Source: Asterias rubens | Taxonomy: Eukaryota | DNA length: 64,000 bases | Direction of reading: 5' to 3' | Assembly (NCBI RefSeq): GCF_902459465.1 | Contig: NC_047068.1 | Location: 11,718,001-11,782,000 of the forward strand | Shown here: piece by piece, positions 7,096 to 58,183 of the stretch | Layout: each line of letters starts with the position of its first letter | Numbering within the stretch: position 1 is the first letter of the stretch | Made by a program: the position numbers and the translations under genes | Notes under the pieces: model-generated | The model's database searches: none | The model's input: the letters and a program-made list of their open reading frames with translations, nothing else | Told to the model about the DNA's origin: nothing

Positions 7096-7947
7096 GCTCT
7101 ATGTCACAAACTAAGTATGTAATTTTCTGTGTCTTTGGCTATGGCTGTGTCTGGTATCCGGCTACATCAACAATTTAGTCAGACTCGTAAACCGTTTTCA
7201 CACACTAAGTTTTTTGGTGCATGGTTAGAAAGCTAAACAAAATGGCTGCCATGTGATAAAGTATGCTCTCCTTCAAGAACATGAGAAGGGCGGAAATAAG
7301 ATGGTGGAAGAAAAATGGAGAAACAGAGAGAGAGCAAGAGGGAAACTTGAGTGACAAAGATAAATAATCTGGAAGAGGATGATGGATTAGGGGAGGAAAG
7401 ACAATTGACAGTTTGAAACAAATGAAACAACGTCTGATTTGCAAACAGATGGACAGTGTAGAACGGAGGGGGAGGAGGAGGAGGAGGATGAGGAGTAGGA
7501 AGATGGGAGGAAGATGAATGATTTGAACGAAAGGAAAGCAATAAGGAAAGTGGTTGGAAAAGGGGCTAGACATCTCCCGGATTCTCGTGGTGCACGGCTA
7601 TGTTCTGTACGTAGAGGGGAAAATCGGAATGATTGCAATCCGAGAAACAATAACCCTTTGCATTATAACACGCAACGCTGCTGGAACATGAGGTGATGTG
7701 GAGGTTTTTTTGCACCAACTACAGCTGTTGTCCAATGAGCTGCCTCCTTTTGCCTGAATGAGGGCGCTATTGAGAGTGTGACATCATACGCAAGGGGTTT
7801 ATGAACTCGGCTACCTTTGGGAAAACTCATGAAACACAAATACTAGACACAAACTGACAGAGATTGGGAATGGGATAGCTGGAATGAGACCTGGAAACTG
7901 GTCACCTTGAGGAACTGAATCAGCCATTTTGCGGGTTAGATTTAAGT

Positions 7948-14162: not shown

Positions 14163-14402
14163 CAAACCTTTGACATGCCACATTCTCGTGGAGGATTAGT
14201 TGAAAGTCTAACAACCTGTAGCTACGATCACAAACCCAATAATCTTCAGCACCTACATAAGCCAATTCAATCCACCTGTCCAAATCACCCCCTTGAAATT
14301 TCCCCATTTCGAAATTGAAAACTAATCATTTTTAAACCTCAATTATGCTTTAAAGGTGCGAGGTGTTTAAAGAGTTAAATACCAGGATTTGATTGAGCTC
14401 AC

Positions 14403-14558
14403 CTCGGCAGCGAAACCTTCAACAAGAATAGCCACCAAGAGGTTGAAGAGCACGTAGTTACCAAAGGTCATCAGCGCAATGAAGTACAATGCAGCCCAAG
14501 CGGTGTTATGGTACATGCCGTTGTACAGGACGATGTTCCAATCTTCTTGGGTAAGAAT
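14403..14558 (-). CDS. Cav3: Cav3 exon: domain II P-loop (selectivity filter E) and IIS6
   Basis: ttttctag|ATT...GAG|gtgagc. It encodes [52 protein letters not shown]. 156 nt, phase 0-0. Confidence 0.98.
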
Positions 14559-15406
14559 CTAGAAAAACAAAAATGAGAAACGAGAAGTTGAAAAAGTGAC
14601 TTAGCAATGATGAACACTACAGTTTAGTTTATATGAGTGATGCAACTTTTTAAGTTCACAATTCATGATGATCAAATCATTTGACTGAACATTCTGCTGA
14701 GCATTCTGGAAACAAAAAATACAGAGGCTAAAAGAAGCCATGTGCTTTATATCATTTTCTAATATATTTTGATTTTTTTTTATTATTAGTATTAAAATTT
14801 AAACATCGGCTTGGTGATTCAATTATCACTGTTAATTTTTATGCTTTCTTTTATAAACGTTCAGAAAAATAAAAATGAAACCAGATTTGAAAGCCAAGAA
14901 TTATTTACACTTTTATTAAAATGTAATAAAGAAAAATATTTTGAATAAAATGAAGACACCTGCTGGTTAAAGAGTCACACACAAAGTCTAACAGAACACT
15001 TGTAGTCACTGCACATGTTTCTTCCATATATGGCTTCCATCGGAAACCATACTTTCTTGTTTGCCTTGAAAACAGGAAAAACTCAAAACAAATGGAACCA
15101 GTTGAAGTCATTGAAGATCGGTGCGTGGTGTGAACATTTCAACGTCCCTCAAGTTTTATTGTATTTTTGCTTACTTCTCATAAACAATGGAAGGTAATTA
15201 GGGCATCAGTTGATATACATGTATGGCATCATAATTTTTTTATCAATTCAAAGAATAAGGCAATGTACCTCGAAAAAAAGATCAGGGGAGGATATACAGG
15301 TGTTCAAGTATAACACAAAATAAATGTATTATCTATCTAATTCTTCGCCCCCCCCCCCCCCCCAAAAAAAAAAAAAACAGTTCCTCAAAACAGGTGATCA
15401 TCACCA

Positions 15407-15831
15407 GGACCCAATTTCATGGCTCTGCTTACCAATGAACAGCTTTGTACGCGTAAATCGCTAAGTAACGTGTAGTATGCACATGCACAAGCCAAAATTC
15501 CCTGCTTACCTGTGAAATACGCTTGACATAAAGCGCAGAATTCCCTGCTTACAAGCACCGATTCTTTGCTTCGGTAAGCAGAGCCATTTTGGGGGTAAGG
15601 TTTTGCCATTCACCTCAAATTCCGTCATAAACCGGAGCCTTAAATGTATAATTGGTTTTCAATCACTACCTGATTGTGTGGGTTTTCCCTATCGGGGGTT
15701 GCCTCCCACGTCTAAAACTTTTCTAAATATGGACCCTTGAGTCTTATTGTTCACTAACTTTCTTACGAACCTGTAAATGTATTCTGCACAGAAATTTGCT
15801 CACCGTTAAGCAGCGCTATGAAATTGGCTCC
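15407..15831. mobile_element. PIF/Harbinger-like MITE (GG.CCAATTTCAT...ATGAAATTGG.CC)
   Basis: TIR pair with internal ctgctaagca/tgcttagcag repeats. Relatives lie at about 797-985, 21582-21780, 36756-37129 and 53470-53645. The superfamily assignment is inference. Confidence 0.7.
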
Positions 15832-18162
15832 GTGATTTAAACTGAAAATTGAGCTAGCAAAGAGCACATGTACATCATTTGAAAGAAAAACATTGACTCA
15901 TTTTAATAATTATCGGTGAAAGTACATTAAGAAACTTGGGTTGCCTTTCCATCGAGACAAACAGTACCATAAGAGATAGTGGCATCTCGTAACTTACTGC
16001 TACTAAATTAATTCTACACTTCATTGGTATCGTGATGCAGGTTCTTGATTAAATCGCCTCGCCGTTTTCTCTGATGGAAATTAAATCTAAATGACCAAGG
16101 GGAATATGGCTTGGCGCTTTTAGGCAACAGTTACAATGACGACAATTCACATGTACACAAGTTGCTATGGCAACAGTCATGCAATACACTAGGAAAAAGA
16201 AAGTTGTTTCTGGGGATTTCTTTGACATTCTTTGACTACACAGAGCCGCTGAGCAGACAACAAAATGCAAAAATGCATTTGCATGGCAAAATGATAGTAG
16301 GGCACCAGTCTCTGCAATTTGAAGATGGCATTTTGGCTGGTAACCTATTTCTGCTAAGCAATAAGTTTCAGTGCTAAGCACATTTGTGTTTTTGTTGCTT
16401 TTGAATTTGGGCCCAGGGGCCTTTTTTTTGTACAAAGCAATAAAATCCATCGCAAAACAAATTTGTCAGTATTGCCATAGTGATTTGTATTGTGAAACCA
16501 CACTTCACTTAAAAAAACTCTCATTGATTTGCAGTTAAGATCAATCTGAGCTCTATGTGAAATCGGCCACTGATCTGAACCCTTGTCTCACAGTGAAGAT
16601 TTCATCTCTCACACCAGACTAAAATCAACTACCCCATTTGGAGTATACAGTCAAGTGAAGCCTAATATCGAACCCTTTTTCAGGATAATCAACACTGACA
16701 CTTCTTCTGAAATGACTTTTCTTATTAAACTACCCCAACTGAGATAATATTCACTGTTTTAGTACCTCAATGGAATGATTTTCCCCAAAGAGCGTATTGA
16801 TAATCCCAAGAGGTAAGTATAACATCTTATAAAACTATACCTCAATAAGTAAATACTATTTGTATACCCTGATTTCAACCTTTCCCCAAAGAGAACATGA
16901 CCAGTCTCTCTGATTTGGGAACCCCTCAGGTAACAATGACACTTTCTTCGGCAGTAAAGTCTCTCAGGAGAAGACAAATGATGTTGACTGAATTGAAAAT
17001 GAGCAACTTTAAGTGTCAGATTAGCCTACCGTGACAGGCTGTGAGTCTTTGAGCGAGTGCGGACAAGCACATCAAGATAAACCCTAAAAGGTCTTCTGTT
17101 TTTCCCGCGGGTAAGAAAAAACGAGAAGCGATCACGTTGGCCCACGGTGGACGATAACAAACATGATAATATGTAATCAGGACAAATGCATATCCCACGT
17201 AGACCTTTGCTACAAGTTCTGTCATGTCTTGTATCACATTATCGCTGTTTGCCAGCGGCACAAATGAAACTTCTTATTTTGCTATTGTCTGGTTCTCTGT
17301 AGGCAGTAACAACAGTAAATGTAAGCATGACAAGGCACCAGACTAATTTGCCTTCAAAGCCTCGGTATGGTTACAACTATCTGAATAGTAAGCAGAGAAT
17401 CAAGATGGATGTAAAATGATAATGGTCTTGACAACAAAAACACTTTATTGGTGCAATAAATCTACAATTTTGTCCATGCCCTATCGTTCTTAAAGTAAGT
17501 GTTTATGATCTAAATATAACATCTGATAGGCTTTGGAGCAATCATGTATTCACATCATGTTCATCATCTTGACTTGACACATTTTTTCGGAGGATCACGT
17601 AGGGTACGAGAATGGCGCCCTCGCAAGTCAGAGGGGTTGAAACATGTCGACCTGAATATGTGCGATGAATACAATAGCTGAACAACATAATTTTTTAAAA
17701 GGTGTGAGGAGGCTGAGTATAGATCTATACAAGACTGTTGTTACCATAGCGATCATGGAATGTCATCTTTGAGAAGGAAAGGCCATTTTCATTTTGCAAA
17801 GGTCACTTTTATTGGAAAATCTGAAAGTCTATGGTAATTATTTTTTAAAGGCACCAAAGCCAAGATCAGCGCAATCCTCCAAGCAGTTCTAGGCTGGCAT
17901 AGAAATCAAGAGATACGTCAAGCAACCTGCATGTAATTTATTTAATTTATATCAGGTATTGAACCATAAGGGAAACTGACTGGGTAGATTTTAAACAATT
18001 TGGTATTTGACAAAGACTTCCTTGAGCAGGACTTGAACCAGCGACCCCTAGTTTAACACTCTACCAACTGAGTTGTCTAGCTGTATGTTGGCAGTCTCCC
18101 TAAATGTCTTTGTTGAAGGGTGCCGGTCAGAAGCAATACATGGTGCAGTGTAGCTGGGGCTA

Positions 18163-18590
18163 CCTATTCACTCTCGCATTTCATTCAAAATATTGTTGTT
18201 AGCTTATAAATGTTTGCATGATTTTGCGCCTCCTTATTTGACAGAGCTGTTAACATTGTACACACCTTCTAGAAATCTTCGTTCTAATAAGAAAAAGTTG
18301 TTTGTTATTTCACCAGTGATGACCAAGTCATATGGTAAACGCAGCTTTGCTCACACCACCTCAACTTTATGAAATAATCTCCCAGAACAACTAAAAAACA
18401 TTGACTCCATTGTTAAGTTTAAGATTGCTTTAAAGACGTACTTATTTAACATTTAATTCATCCATTTTGTTGGTTACCCAGTACATCTTGTCTTTGTATT
18501 CTGTTGTGTTTTTCTAAAGAGCGCTTAGGGACATGTTTTACTACTATGTGTTATGCGCTATATAAAAATGGTTAACTATTATTATCAATT
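18163..18590 (+). mobile_element. L2-clade LINE 3' end (5'-truncated)
   Basis: Translates PIHSRISFKILLLAYKCLHDFAPPYLTELLTLYTPSRNLRS...YGKRSFA...L*NNLPEQLKNIDSIVKFKIALKTYLF, followed by a 3'UTR and a (tat) tail. Confidence 0.85.
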
Positions 18591-18653
18591 TACCAAAGTT
18601 TACCATATAATTAGTGACTTTATCATATTTATTGATTGATTGAAAAATCTTAC

Positions 18654-18768
18654 CTGAAACACAGTCACAATTGCCCAGAGGAGGTTGTCAAAGTTCTTCC
18701 GGTCGCATTCTTCAACTCCTTTAACTATTTTACAGAAGTTACAACCAAACAGGTGCATTCCTAGGATG
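18654..18768 (-). CDS. Cav3: Cav3 exon 12 equivalent: IIS5-P turret (three Cys)
   Basis: cccacag|C...CAG|gtaaga. It encodes [38 protein letters not shown]. 115 nt. Not in the ORF track. Confidence 0.97.
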
Positions 18769-18862
18769 CTGTGGGATTGAAAACCAAATTAGACCAATTA
18801 TATCATCAAGGTCAAAATCAGATAAATTAGCGCTTGAGGTAGTGATATTTTTCAAAATGGCA

Positions 18863-19281
18863 GGTTCGAATCCCAGCAGGTAAGTTACGTACTGCCCACG
18901 CTTCCCACCATAAAGTATTTTGTATTCTGTGGCGAAAACAAACTGGCCTTGTCAATCGGCCTCTTAACTTTGATTGTTAATCATCCAGGTGTAATTTTAA
19001 GTTTTTTATTTGAGGTTCGAATCCCAGCAGGTATAATTATTGCCCATGCTTCCAACCATAAAGTAGTTTGTATTCTGTGGCTGAAAACAAACTGGCCTTG
19101 TCAATCGGCCTCTTAACTTTGATGGTTAATCATCCAGGTGTAAATTTAATTTTTTAATTTGAGGTTCGAATCCCAGCAGGTATAGTTATTGCCCATGCTT
19201 CCAACCATAAAGTAGTTTGTATCCTGTGGCCGAAAACAAACTGGCCTTGTCAACCGGCCTCTTAACTTTGATGGTTAATCA
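18863..19281 (+). repeat. ~150-bp unit x2.8, each starting with Pol III B-box ggttcgaatccc (SINE-derived tandem)
   Basis: Units start at 18863, 19014 and 19163 and are near-identical. Confidence 0.9.
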
Positions 19282-19712
19282 GGGAGGTGACGATCAAGCA
19301 GCCTTGGTTATGTACCAACTCTCCAGGGAATTGAGATTGCGTCATGAAGTAATAACGAAAAGCACCTTGAATATTACTCCCTGTTGCCGAGCTAGGGGGT
19401 AGTCTCCAGAACGTTACTTTCATTAAGAAAAAATAAAGAACCAAATTGTTTGTTTAGCAACTGAAGTCTTTTAACCTCCTTCTCAAAAGCTCAATACTTT
19501 AGAGGGAGCCGTTTCTCACAATGTTCTGTACTATAAACAGCTCTTCATTGCTTGTTACCAAGTAAGTTTTATGCTAAAACTTACTTAGAGTAATTACCAA
19601 GGGTCCAGTGCCTTAAACAAGTCCACGGTATACTTAGGTGCTAGGTCTTGAAATGATGAAAAGTCAAGATCTTAATAAAAAAAGCAAACAAAAAAGAGAC
19701 TGAATGACTTAC

Positions 19713-19901
19713 CTGAAGATGAAGATAAAAAGCGACAGGAGAGAGAAGAATGTCGCAACATTGTCCATGGTCTTCAACATGATGAGAAGCTGGCGTCTTA
19801 AAGCAGGCATGAAACGGACCAGTTTAAGGATTCGGAGAAGACGGAAGGTTCGTAGGACAGAGAGACCCCCTCCTTGGCCTTGCTGCATGATTTCAACAAC
19901 G
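19713..19901 (-). CDS. Cav3: Cav3 exon: IIS3-S4 voltage sensor and IIS5
   Basis: ccctcacag|C...AG|gtaagt. It encodes [63 protein letters not shown]. Confidence 0.98.
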
Positions 19902-19944
19902 CTGTGAGGGTTAGAGGGTAAAGGGATAGTAGAGAGATGATAAT

Positions 19945-20245
19945 AATAATAATAACCTTATTTATATAGTGCTTTTTACAAATTTGATAAAAACAGTTTA
20001 AGAAATACAAAAGCGACCAAAGAAAAAACAATAGAGTTCAAAACTACACATTTCACAAACGAAAACAATTAACCACATTATACCTTAGCGTAACTAAGGA
20101 TAGAGGTGGGGTTTTATTTGAGATTTTGAAGAGCTCAGGGTATTAACTAATTAAACAGATTGAGGAAGATGGTTCCAGCATTTCGGCCCCTTGCTGCAAA
20201 AGCTTTAGGGCCTAGCAACTCGTCAGAATCAAGCATCCTTTTAGA
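19945..20245 (-). mobile_element. L2-type LINE 3' fragment
   Basis: Minus-strand GPKAFAA..GPKCWNHLPQSV...KSQIKPHLY (with a frameshift) and a (tta)n tail near 19945. Confidence 0.6.
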
Positions 20246-29626: not shown

Positions 29627-30425
29627 CGCTGGTTTTATTCCCGGTCCTGAGAGGGGGTGGTATTCTGTATTTATTGAGGGAGTCACCAAGGCAAAGTTCC
29701 TTCCATTGCTCCTGTAGCTTATTAGGAGGCACATCAGTCATTGTATTCAGCGCTGTCTCAGCGGTCAGTTTAGCCAGGGCCATATTCTGTCTTGTATCCT
29801 TAGAGTTTGTGGTGGGATAATTGATTGAGGAGGCCCGATGAATGGACAGAGTGGTCACTACGTGGTGATGTGGGGACGACTTGCACCGTGACCGACTGGG
29901 TATGGGTTCTAAGCGGGAGAGGTTCTCTGTGCAAAAGGTTATGGAGTGCAGCGAGTCATTGCTTGGTCCTAAGCTACCATTTGTGGACGGCACCATGAGT
30001 CTATTTTGCCTGGTTGGCGAGGAGCCAATATCACTGTTTTCAGGACTAGCCCTTGGCGCGTGAGAGCCGTTGTTCCCAAAGTGATAATGGTGGTGGTGGT
30101 GATGGTGGTGGCAGTGCACATGCACAGATTTCGTCCTACGTTTTTTGCGACGTAACGAAATGGCAGGCATCACTTTTTGTTGTCGCTTTCCTTGGATACC
30201 TTTGTGCCAGCGGCGGACTTTCCGCTTTGCCTGCCGCACAAGATGTCCGATGTATTTCAGGATCTCGTCGTAGCAGCTCCCGGGCTCTCCGTTGCTGGCC
30301 AGCGTGCTCGTTGAACGAAATCGTTTCCTCTGCTCCGCCATTAACTTACTCTCTCTTTGTTTTGTTTCAGAAAATTGAGTTGCTATGACTACTAGACACA
30401 AATTTATCAGGAAGAAGGCACCAAT
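29627..30425 (-). CDS. Cav3: Cav3 exon 8 equivalent: IS6, gating brake, poly-His, APRASPE
   Basis: ttttcag|ATT...G|gtaagt. It encodes [25 protein letters not shown]...[23 protein letters not shown]...[12 protein letters not shown]...APRASPE. 799 nt. Confidence 0.97.
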
Positions 30426-31012
30426 CTGAAAACCAAAAATGAACTTTTTTAGTGACGGAAGTTGTCCTCAGTTTTGTTTACAGAAGTTTAAGTTCACAAA
30501 CTAAAGAAAACAAATTGTAAACAAATTACTCAAATATGTTAAAACTTTCTTCGAAAATGATGTACTGATAAAGTTGTTAGTTTAGAAATAATGAAACTGG
30601 TGTTAACTTTGATACTAATTTTTTTTTTTAGCAGTTAAAACATGAACAGCAACATTTAGTTCAACCTTCTAAATCACCTTCAATGAAAATGTTAACAAAT
30701 TGTGGGAATTATCAGTAAACGGATGGAAAATGATTAAAACAAATGAAGAATGAAATATTAAAATGAGTGGACATCATCAGTCAAACTACATGCAGTGTAA
30801 CAAGCAAAAGTTGCTTACACGCATCGTTATAGAACCCTCACACAATGCGGAACGCATCTCCTACGAATACGCGTCTATTCGTTTCCACCATTTTGGGAGT
30901 CAAGTCCGTTGTGCACATCTTGGCTACCAAAGATCGGTGCCTTAAGTGCACTACATTTTGTTCAAGGAGTCTATTGGTAGACTGGGAAACGTTCACAATC
31001 TCATTCAGTTAA

Positions 31013-33290: not shown

Positions 33291-33383
33291 TACAATGAGT
33301 ACGACAAAATACGCCCAATTCCAAAAACTATGCACATCTTGGATATGATACATGATATCCGTCCATCCCTCTAAGGTGATGAC
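33291..33383 (-). CDS. Cav3: Cav3 exon: domain I P-loop (selectivity filter E)
   Basis: cggccag|GTC...GTA|gtaagt. It encodes [31 protein letters not shown]. 93 nt, phase 0-0. Confidence 0.97.
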
Positions 33384-34816
33384 CTGGCCGATATAAATCC
33401 AGAGGGAGGGTGGTGGTACCCGAAGGCCGATATTAATCCAGAGGGAGGGTGGTACCAGAAGGAGGAATGTGAACAAAATACAAAACAATGATGTTTGGTT
33501 AAAAAATGAACTAACACAACATGCAGGACGAATGTGGGTCTTAGTGCCAGGTACAGCGCCCGGGTACGGCACCCGGAAACGGCATTGATGCTGAGCCGAC
33601 GACATTGATGCTGTTGATGATGTCCCTTGAAATGAAACTCATGCAAACTACGGCCTGAAACTACAACCTAACTTCAGGTCTTCAAATCTAGTTCAAGGCA
33701 TGCATGAGTTGTCAAGGGGTAGGAGAGAACACAGGATGGGGTAGCATTCCTCGAGGGAGAAGTGTCAGTCTACTTACAACAATCAACAACATAAAATAGA
33801 TCCAGACCCACGAGGAGTGTACGTCCTGGAGATAATACTGTATTTCAACCCAGCTTTCTAATGTGATAACCTGAACACGGATTGAGGAGAAAAGCAGATA
33901 GCGACTTGATAGAGAGAAAAAAACAAAAATACAACCTCAACAAATACAAAATACACAGAATGAAGAAGAATACAAAAACATGGACGTACAATAATAATCT
34001 TGAGAAAATATTAGCTACATTAAATATAAAAGAAAACACATACATGTAGCAAAGACAAACACACACAGAGAAATTTGCCAAGAACAAAGCAAACATCTTA
34101 GAAAAAACACAAGGACTTTCTCATCAAGAAGAGAAAACATGAGACAAAATGATGAATATGAGAAAAAAAACATGAACAACCGCACAACTAAGAAAACACA
34201 AACAAAAACTGACAAATAGGAAAAACAAGTGATAAAAAAGGATACTTGACGTACATTGTGACAAAACAAACATAACATCCAAGGAAGACGGTTGAAAAGA
34301 TGATGGAAGCTGACAAAAACAGACAGTGGAAAAAAACAAACTAACAAGACAAACTCACATAACATGGTTTGTCTAAAGAATCAGAGATGAAAACGATTTG
34401 TGGATGAAATCAGATGGAGGACAAATTACAAGATGCAGATCAAGAAAAATAATTTTTTTAAGAACCACAAGAAGAAAGGAAGAGATTGTCACAGAAAGTA
34501 TCTATAACTTGAAGAAGAGACTTTAGTTATGAGAATCCAACAAACATACATGAGTGAATGCACTCATATATGTAACAACACTTTGAAAAAGAAATAAATC
34601 TTACAGATCCAAATTACATTATGTGCAATCAGAAGCTTGCTTTCTCTACACAAGTGAATACAAGTGCAAATATATAGGACACTCATCGGAATAACAAAAT
34701 TAGCTCAAATCAAATCCTACAAAATTTTGTGCAGTTTTTGCTTCTTAAATATTTGTTTACTTCAAGATAGCTCAACAGTTCATTTGATTTGGAATTGTCA
34801 AACTTTCCTTATTTAA

Positions 34817-54642: not shown

Positions 54643-54952
54643 NNNNNNNNNNNNNNNNNNNNNNNNNNNNNNNNNNNNNNNNNNNNNNNNNNNNNNNNNN
54701 NNNNNNNNNNNNNNNNNNNNNNNNNNNNNNNNNNNNNNNNNNNNNNNNNNNNNNNNNNNNNNNNNNNNNNNNNNNNNNNNNNNNNNNNNNNNNNNNNNNN
54801 NNNNNNNNNNNNNNNNNNNNNNNNNNNNNNNNNNNNNNNNNNNNNNNNNNNNNNNNNNNNNNNNNNNNNNNNNNNNNNNNNNNNNNNNNNNNNNNNNNNN
54901 NNNNNNNNNNNNNNNNNNNNNNNNNNNNNNNNNNNNNNNNNNNNNNNNNNNN
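54643..54952. other. Assembly gap (310 N)
   Basis: Run of N. The true length is unknown. Confidence 1.
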
Positions 54953-57246: not shown

Positions 57247-57940
57247 TTAAAGGTGTGAAATTATTCAACATTCATCTAGCGCTGACCCAGCCCATAAATA
57301 AATCCAGCGATGTTCACACCTCCAACATTCTCGGAGCAGGACCTGAGCTGGATCTGAGATGGATCTGAGACGGAGCTGTGATGTCATTTCTAACAATCCT
57401 AAAGGTCAGCGTGTAGATAACATTTCAATGAAACCTACTGAGTTGAAAAGTTAGAGAACACCTGCCATGCTAATCGATCACAGGCAAAGACGAAAGGTCT
57501 GGCAAGTTCTGCCTTTCAATAAATCACAGATAAATATTGCTTCTTCTTTTTTCTTACACATTAAAGCAGTACAGCTCATATTTTGTATTTTAAAAAAGCT
57601 CAGTGTATCCTTTCTAAAACACAAAAAACCAAAAAAGGAAAGAACAAATTTAGATTTTACAATTGTATAGATGTTTACTCCTGTATGGAATTTAAGGCAT
57701 GTATGGTGAGGTATCAATATATATTTGGTTTGCGGTAACAAGACAGATTCTCAATAATCTATCTGGCAAGTAGATACACACATGGCATACCACAAAACAA
57801 ATATGTTTACTTCTTTTTTCAACGAATCAAACAAGTAAATTGCATTTAGTTGATGTTACTTAATTAAACCCTTTTTTTCCCTTAAGAACATCAAAGCTGC
57901 ATGCAGTGAATGACATTTACAGGCAACACAGATAACTCAC

Positions 57941-58183
57941 CCAGCCACGACGATAAAACAATCAAGGCGATTCCATGTCTCATGAAAGTACCCTTGTTGA
58001 CCTTTGACCCCCATGGCCAGAAGTTTGATGACCATCTCAGCAGCGAAGAATGCGAAGATGAAGTGGTCAAAGCCGTCTAGAACCACGCATCGTACTGTGT
58101 TGCACTCTTTCTCGCAAGGTAGATACATGCCGAGGGTAATACAGTTCAATATGATGACTGCCATGCTGATCCGCTCAAACCAA
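57941..58183 (-). CDS. Cav3: Cav3 exon: IS1-IS3
   Basis: Encodes [80 protein letters not shown]. Donor GG|gtgagt. The acceptor is AC, not AG. Confidence 0.97.

Follow-up and report, generated by a model that had tools for sequence, protein, structure and literature searches.

A lone 12a-type turret exon in the T-type (Cav3) channel gene of a sea star and its possible bearing on sodium permeability

Exon 12 of the Cav3 (T-type) channel gene of the sea star Asterias rubens, reconstructed here from a genomic stretch of 64,000 nucleotides (the window), is probably a single and constitutively used turret exon of the ancestral "12a" form, and a mixed Ca2+/Na+ current is expected from the channel. 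This reading is based on (i) the splice sites, reading frame and RNA joints of the exon, (ii) searches of both flanking introns for a second exon 12, with a positive control in the snail Lymnaea, (iii) the position of the protein in a gene tree, and (iv) comparison of the turret residues with those of channels of known ion preference. A pair of tandem exons for the selectivity filter of domain I was found in the same gene.

Reconstruction of the gene and of exon 12

Cav3 references align to exons of the window from domain I S1 (58182) to domain II S6 (14385). Because nothing past domain II S6 (14385) aligns within the window, the window holds the first half of the Cav3 gene, and domains III and IV lie beyond it. 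On these alignments, the gene encodes a four-domain Cav3 channel alpha-1, matching Cav3 rather than Cav1/2 or Nav. Among solved structures, the best match of exon 13 is human Cav3.1 (E 1.7e-31), and Cav2.3 follows at E 3.8e-15. The filter residues seen in the window are the Glu of domain I (TLEGW or TLESW) and the Glu-Asp of domain II (TQEDW), those of domains III and IV lying outside it. The coordinates of the features discussed below are collected in Table 1.

The large exon of the I-II linker (29811-30443, minus strand) encodes eight consecutive His past the gating-brake region. This stretch is also kept in two related contigs (L001 and L002) and in four of the protein matches (P0280-P0283).

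The preliminary description of this DNA, made from the letters, had proposed a turret exon of 38 codons with three Cys at 18654-18768. The coordinates are right, and the coding strand is minus; translation of the plus strand at this place gives nonsense and was rejected. The exon has 115 nt, AG/GT borders and phase 1, as judged from the sequence and the splice sites. Read from 18768 down to 18654, it follows the acceptor cccacag/C, opens with C ATC CTA GGA ATG and closes with the donor TTT CAG/gtaagat. The encoded peptide starts with ILGMHLFG and ends with the pore helix (TVFQ at its end); Cys residues occupy positions 9, 12 and 21 in a CxxC-8-C pattern, Lys residues occupy positions 13, 16 and 24, and the motif D-R-K-N-F-D stands after the third Cys. 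Splicing of exons 11, 12 and 13 yields a single open frame that passes from IIS4-S5 through the turret and the VFQ/ILTQEDW junction to IIS6.

Splicing was examined in RNA contigs assembled from four public runs (X1-X4) over the region 14300-20000; such contigs drop rare isoforms. Two organisms are represented: the first matches the window exactly, and the second is a close relative, whose exon 12 encodes an identical protein and has one synonymous change at 18720. Two joints, 19713/18768 and 18654/14558, both GT..AG on the minus strand, were found in the four runs and in both species. Among the RNA joints listed, there is no further canonical joint in 14300-20000; the remaining ones lie in high-depth repeats and are without splice-site ends. 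The two joints reproduce exactly the intron borders given in the preliminary description (14559-18653 and 18769-19712). Exon 12 is spliced constitutively in the RNA examined.

Table 1. Features of the Cav3 gene in the window
Feature	Position	Strand	Evidence
Exon of domain I S1-S2, with three-Cys loop P-C-x3-C-x4-C	57940..58182	-	Cav3 alignment; pattern common to bird and Lymnaea Cav3
Exon a of the domain I filter, VITLESW..., 93 nt, phase 0	33778-33870	-	CAG/G acceptor, GTAAGT donor
Exon b of the domain I filter, VITLEGW..., 93 nt, phase 0	33291-33383	-	CAG/G acceptor, GTAAGT donor
Exon 11: IIS4, S4-S5 linker, most of IIS5	19713..19904	-	RNA contigs, joint 19713/18768, frame, tblastn to Cav3 references
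Intron 11-12, 944 nt, without exon-12-like frame	18769..19712	-	Probe searches, GT..AG joint
Exon 12: end of IIS5, L5II turret (CxxC-8-C, D-R-K), pore helix P1	18654..18768	-	Sequence, splice sites, RNA joints
Intron 12-13, 4095 nt, repeat-rich, without exon-12-like frame	14559..18653	-	Probe searches, non-canonical joints only
Exon 13: domain II filter Glu and "beacon" Asp (TQEDW), P2 helix, IIS6	14403..14558	-	RNA joint 18654/14558

Search for a second exon 12

Intron 12-13 is the place where exon 12b is expected in protostomes. Neither this intron nor intron 11-12 contains an assembly gap, the sole N run of the window being at 54643-54952. Self-comparison by tblastn with the exon 12 peptide (word size 2) returned exon 12 itself at E 7e-25 and no second exon 12 in 14559-19712, where the next-best match had E 0.15. 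In the window as a whole, a match at 40467-40508 (E 0.021) was considered as a second exon 12 and rejected, being the pore helix of domain I. A motif scan for LGM..FG or W...TVFQ found no other instance beyond exon 12, and an in-frame [TSA][VIL]FQ motif with a donor site was found nowhere else in the two introns.

Seven long turret peptides served as 12b probes, including five-Cys 12b peptides from Lymnaea, beetle and other contigs. Each of them matched exon 12 via its conserved ends (E 1e-6 to 3e-14); no 12b-like exon was detected with these probes, everything beyond exon 12 being at E 0.14 or worse. At the same settings, the sea-star peptide recovered both exon 12a (43002-43118, E 9e-16) and exon 12b (45370-45519, E 5e-11) in the Cav3 locus of Lymnaea stagnalis (L006, assembly GCA_964033795.1). 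Since the same search recovers both exons in Lymnaea, a 12b-type exon in the sea-star introns would have shown. The Lymnaea gene model itself (CAL1528277.1, P0002) carries the mutually exclusive 12a and 12b in one protein, which is an annotation error.

Self, motif and 12b-probe searches and the RNA thus agree with the preliminary description that there is only one exon 12, of the short tri-Cys type. The two checks proposed there, a tBLASTn comparison of 12a and 12b peptides with both introns and an inspection of transcripts for variants, bring the same answer: no second exon was found while the Lymnaea control was positive, and the RNA contigs join exon 12 only to exons 11 and 13. It is extremely improbable that a 12b-type exon exists and was missed, whether by being too divergent, by lying in a mis-assembled stretch or by being used in unsampled tissues. 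Such an exon could be hidden by the loss of rare variants from assembled contigs or among 50 low-support joints beyond those listed, but it would have to lie in gap-free introns that have no other in-frame [TSA][VIL]FQ motif with a donor, and to escape every probe, each of which finds one exon here, in a search that finds both in Lymnaea.

Two further observations concern the introns themselves. Within 14559-19712 they contain repeats at very high RNA and DNA contig depth, for example at 19457-19647, 17738-17928 and 15255-15445. At approximately 18830-19274, several tandem copies of a short element follow each other, and their translation repeats the same peptide.

Evolutionary position of the lone exon

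For the gene tree, 585 residues were pieced together from the window. The window protein groups with tunicates and vertebrates versus all protostome sequences (SH-aLRT 97) and stands outside the chordates (SH-aLRT 98), as expected for an echinoderm. Position 5 of the turret is His in the sea star, as in chordates, and it is mostly Asn in the aligned 12a turrets of arthropods, snails and a horsehair worm (Gordionus). The exon had initially been viewed in the frame of the protostome 12a/12b pair of Lymnaea; this framing does not fit an animal that groups with chordates (SH-aLRT 97, as above) and an exon 12b that has been published as protostome-only. Exon 12b is described as "unique to protostomes" by Smith et al. 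2017 (PMC5379919), and Guan et al. follow turrets of the 12a type across a range that begins with flatworms and extends to hemichordates and tunicates, stating that the animals in this range carry "one or both" exons (PMC7382465).

The Ciona and Phallusia proteins among our matches have a single tri-Cys turret, as in the sea star. Among the best 120 matches of a Ciona query (domain II region) there was no named echinoderm Cav3, only tunicates, one barnacle and vertebrates. A query with the frame of the I-II linker matched genomic frames only; in five loci derived from these matches (L001-L005) no domain II exons were found, and only L002 has the domain I filter exon.

Because the animal is a deuterostome and 12b is published as protostome-only, a lone 12a-type exon is the expected deuterostome state and not a loss; at the level of the phylum, the support for this comes from papers and a single gene tree. 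Exon 12b, long and with five Cys, is a novelty of protostomes and was never present in the sea-star lineage, and therefore no switch has been lost in the sea star. Vertebrates later lost Cys2 and Cys3 of the turret. The single exon, taken as a genomic fact, is expected and has been largely published at the phylum level for non-vertebrate deuterostomes.

Comparison with characterized turrets

With 38 residues (38-46 in the class), an extent from the end of IIS5 to the pore helix P1, and the tri-Cys CxxC...C arrangement, the sea-star exon fits the 12a class. The 12b partner of this class (five Cys, 48-55 residues) is absent in the sea star, and its presence is not a defining feature outside protostomes (PMC5379919). 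Exon 12a of Lymnaea stagnalis LCav3 (Senatore et al. 2014; Guan et al. 2020, 2022) has the same borders (ILGM... and ...TVFQ), the same CxxC...C frame and a Lys three residues past the last Cys, and the next exon carries the Glu-Asp filter; identity over exon 12 is 67%. The two genes differ in that a mutually exclusive exon 12b lies 2.25 kb downstream of 12a in Lymnaea and is absent from the sea star. Between Cys2 and Cys3, the loop has 8 residues in the sea star and 9 in Lymnaea, where it holds a fourth Cys. The Na+ permeability of the Lymnaea channel has been measured, whereas the sea-star channel is known here from its sequence.

Tunicates (Ciona, Phallusia) are likewise deuterostomes with a single tri-Cys turret of the 12a type, with His at position 5 and with C-D-R-K; their turret has 39 residues, compared with 38 in the sea star, and the loop residues differ. 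The first turret Cys of vertebrate Cav3.1-3.3 bonds to voltage sensor I, and in Cav3.1 and in the models of the Lymnaea channel the partner of this Cys is provided by the S1-S2 loop of domain I. Exon 12 of vertebrate Cav3.1-3.3 (6KZO) resembles that of the sea star in its length class (38-39), the first Cys, the D-R-K-N-F-D motif and the pore helix. In vertebrates, however, Cys2 is replaced by Ala or Ser and Cys3 by Pro, and hence these Ca2+-preferring channels are without the intraturret strap.

To locate the lysine implicated in ion preference, we matched the numbering of P0002, the genomic protein of Lymnaea, to the positions given in the literature (PMC7382465, PMC9694082). In exon 12a of Lymnaea, the Cys residues are C1051, C1054 and C1064, and K1067 is the K of C-D-R-K, three residues past the last Cys; in exon 12b, they are C1054, C1062, C1064, C1073 and C1075, and A1078 is the A of C-D-R-A. 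The homolog of K1067 in the sea star is Lys24, the K of its own C-D-R-K. The implicated lysine is thus distinct from the two loop Lys among which the preliminary description had sought it; it stands three residues past the third Cys.

This lysine is widespread. A search of 1.8 billion proteins gave 134 tri-Cys turrets for comparison, and the K1067-equivalent Lys is present in all but two of them (132/134); the loop of 8 residues between Cys2 and Cys3, as in the sea star, was seen in 27 of the 134. The same Lys is also found in Ca-preferring vertebrate channels (as P-D-R-K) and in the exon 12b of a beetle. The Lys is thus required by the snail model without being diagnostic, and alone it proves little, because Ca-selective vertebrate channels keep it too.

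The partner Cys for the turret is present in the domain I S1-S2 loop of the sea star within its P-C-x3-C-x4-C pattern, the disulfides themselves being predicted. By analogy with the structures and models of snail and human channels, Cys9 would bond the turret to voltage sensor I, and Cys12 and Cys21 would strap the loop of 8 residues. The strap may hold Lys24 near the filter-adjacent Asp of domain II and in this way weaken the preference for Ca2+. With regard to exon 12, the turret is fixed and the channel would have a single ion preference in all tissues. In the snail work, high Na+ passage also needs a four-Cys L6 loop in domain IV (PMC7382465, PMC9694082), a region that in the sea-star gene lies outside the window. 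When snail exon 12a was placed in human Cav3.2, Na+ passage rose approximately 3-fold without the domain IV loop and approximately 10-fold with it (PMC7382465).

Tandem exons for the domain I filter

The Cav3 references align twice in the window over one segment of 31 residues in domain I, at exons a and b (Table 1). The two exons lie 394 nt apart, and each codes for the filter Glu, helix P2 and the beginning of IS6. Their products agree at 20 of the 31 residues. Given saturation at synonymous sites (pS 0.92) and a pN of 0.26, both copies are regarded as retained coding exons. Exons a and b look like a candidate mutually exclusive pair.

A like pair was found in another invertebrate, in a contig whose nearest reference is Lymnaea (L002; ENA ERZ25069296, ctg21802_4x_l). 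Its two exons, at 7217-7309 and 7359-7451, are 49 nt apart and have perfect splice sites (pS 0.72, pN 0.05). In the second copy, the filter Glu is changed to Ala and a nearby Asp to Asn, the rest being nearly identical; this pair is a candidate for a splice switch that acts on the selectivity filter of domain I in a Cav3 channel. Only one copy of the domain I filter exon is present in the Lymnaea locus L006. No published account of such a domain I exon pair in Cav3 was found in the literature.

The gene could accordingly be suspected of having its pore splice switch in domain I instead of exon 12, with exons a and b tuning ion preference or gating. We regard this as rather unlikely. The equal length and phase of the two exons, their matching CAG/G acceptors and GTAAGT donors, the identity of 20/31 residues with a pS of 0.92 versus a pN of 0.26, and the like pair of L002 with its Glu-to-Ala second copy all speak for such a switch. 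However, both sea-star copies keep the filter Glu, which leaves an effect on selectivity speculative, and a protein search with the exon-a frame gave no match, a result that is uninformative owing to length limits. The pair nevertheless bears on the earlier proposal that the animal has no splice switch: with regard to 12a/12b this proposal is borne out by the searches and the RNA, whereas at the level of the gene it may fail on account of the domain I pair at 33.3-33.9 kb.

Ion preference of the channel

From the turret and filter residues, a mixed Ca2+/Na+ current is predicted, in which Na+ would have an appreciable share. In sea water, the chance that Na+ carries over half of the inward current is roughly even. 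Two views of such channels have been published. According to Smith et al. 2017, 12a-like turrets outside protostomes give only moderate Na+ permeability, and sea-star eggs are cited as an example (PMC5379919). The Spafford group has put forward a role for 12a channels in carrying Na+ where Nav1 is missing, be it from a whole animal or from a tissue, and counts echinoderms as lacking Nav1 (PMC6259924, PMC9694082).

The relevant native current is that of sea-star eggs.

Channel I of sea-star oocytes, described by Hagiwara in 1975, is reportedly the first low-voltage-activated Ca current to have been described. According to Hagiwara et al. 1975, the channel I current of the egg has a low threshold, depends on both Ca2+ and external Na+, and does not discriminate between Li, Na, Rb and Cs; their conclusion is that Ca2+ carries the current and that Na+ modifies it rather than permeates (PMC2214882). 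The threshold, -55 to -50 mV, fits a T-type channel, and the Na+ dependence fits a 12a-type turret; the species, Mediaster, is another one of the same animal class, and the link from gene to current is one that we infer. The Na+ dependence is compatible with a Na+-permeant T-type channel and does not prove one.

A stronger claim would be that the channel is constitutively and predominantly sodium-passing, like Lymnaea LCav3-12a, in which approximately 90% of the inward current is Na+, and that it replaces the absent Nav1. All determinants visible in the window are present (the tri-Cys turret, the K1067 equivalent, the Glu-Asp and the domain I partner Cys), non-vertebrates are all reported to have the additional determinant, an extra Cys pair in L6 of domain IV (PMC7382465), Nav1 is reported absent from echinoderms (PMC6259924, PMC9694082), and channel I of the egg depends on external Na+ according to Hagiwara et al. 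(PMC2214882). We nonetheless judge this claim to be unlikely. The Lys is not sufficient, being present in Ca-preferring vertebrate channels and in beetle 12b, and molluscs and nematodes are the only animals in which the K/A rule has been demonstrated (PMC9694082); sea-star egg currents are put in the low-Na+ group by Smith et al. 2017 (PMC5379919); the current of Hagiwara et al. also needed Ca2+ and was without selectivity among Li, Na, Rb and Cs (PMC2214882); and domain IV lies outside the window.

The opposite claim is that the channel prefers Ca2+ about as much as the Cav3 channels of Trichoplax and vertebrates (20-30% Na+), the tri-Cys turret being simply ancestral architecture and extreme Na+ passage requiring protostome-specific changes beyond exon 12. 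This is possible, with the chances somewhat against it. It agrees with what Smith et al. 2017 argue and with their data (PMC5379919), with the only approximately 3-fold rise in Na+ passage that snail 12a alone brings to human Cav3.2 (PMC7382465), and with the conclusion of Hagiwara et al. that Ca2+ is the carrier (PMC2214882). On the other hand, the Cys2-Cys3 strap of the sea star is absent from Trichoplax and vertebrates (PMC7382465), and the Na+ dependence of the native current would be left unexplained. The reading that we prefer remains that of a lone, constitutive 12a-type exon in a channel with a mixed Ca2+/Na+ current.

Implications

No paper linking the sea-star Cav3 gene to the current of Hagiwara et al. 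was found in the literature. This link is the only fresh angle of the present analysis, the Na+ hypothesis having already been proposed in general terms. In its full form it would state that the sea-star Cav3, fixed in its 12a form, is the basis of the Na+-dependent channel I as a mixed or mainly Na+ low-threshold channel whose pore is tuned by the domain I exon pair; we offer this highly tentatively, as an idea with most of the probability against it.

The Na+ dependence of the T-type current of sea-star eggs has never been explained molecularly, and the sea-star turret carries the frame and the lysine of the Na+-passing snail turret, without an alternative form. Thus, the sea-star Cav3 bears on whether a 12a turret alone predicts Na+ passage outside protostomes, a point on which the two published views disagree, and on whether echinoderms use Cav3 instead of the missing Nav1. 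If the channel I reading is true, sea stars would have a standing low-threshold Na+-passing channel in a group reported to be without Nav1.
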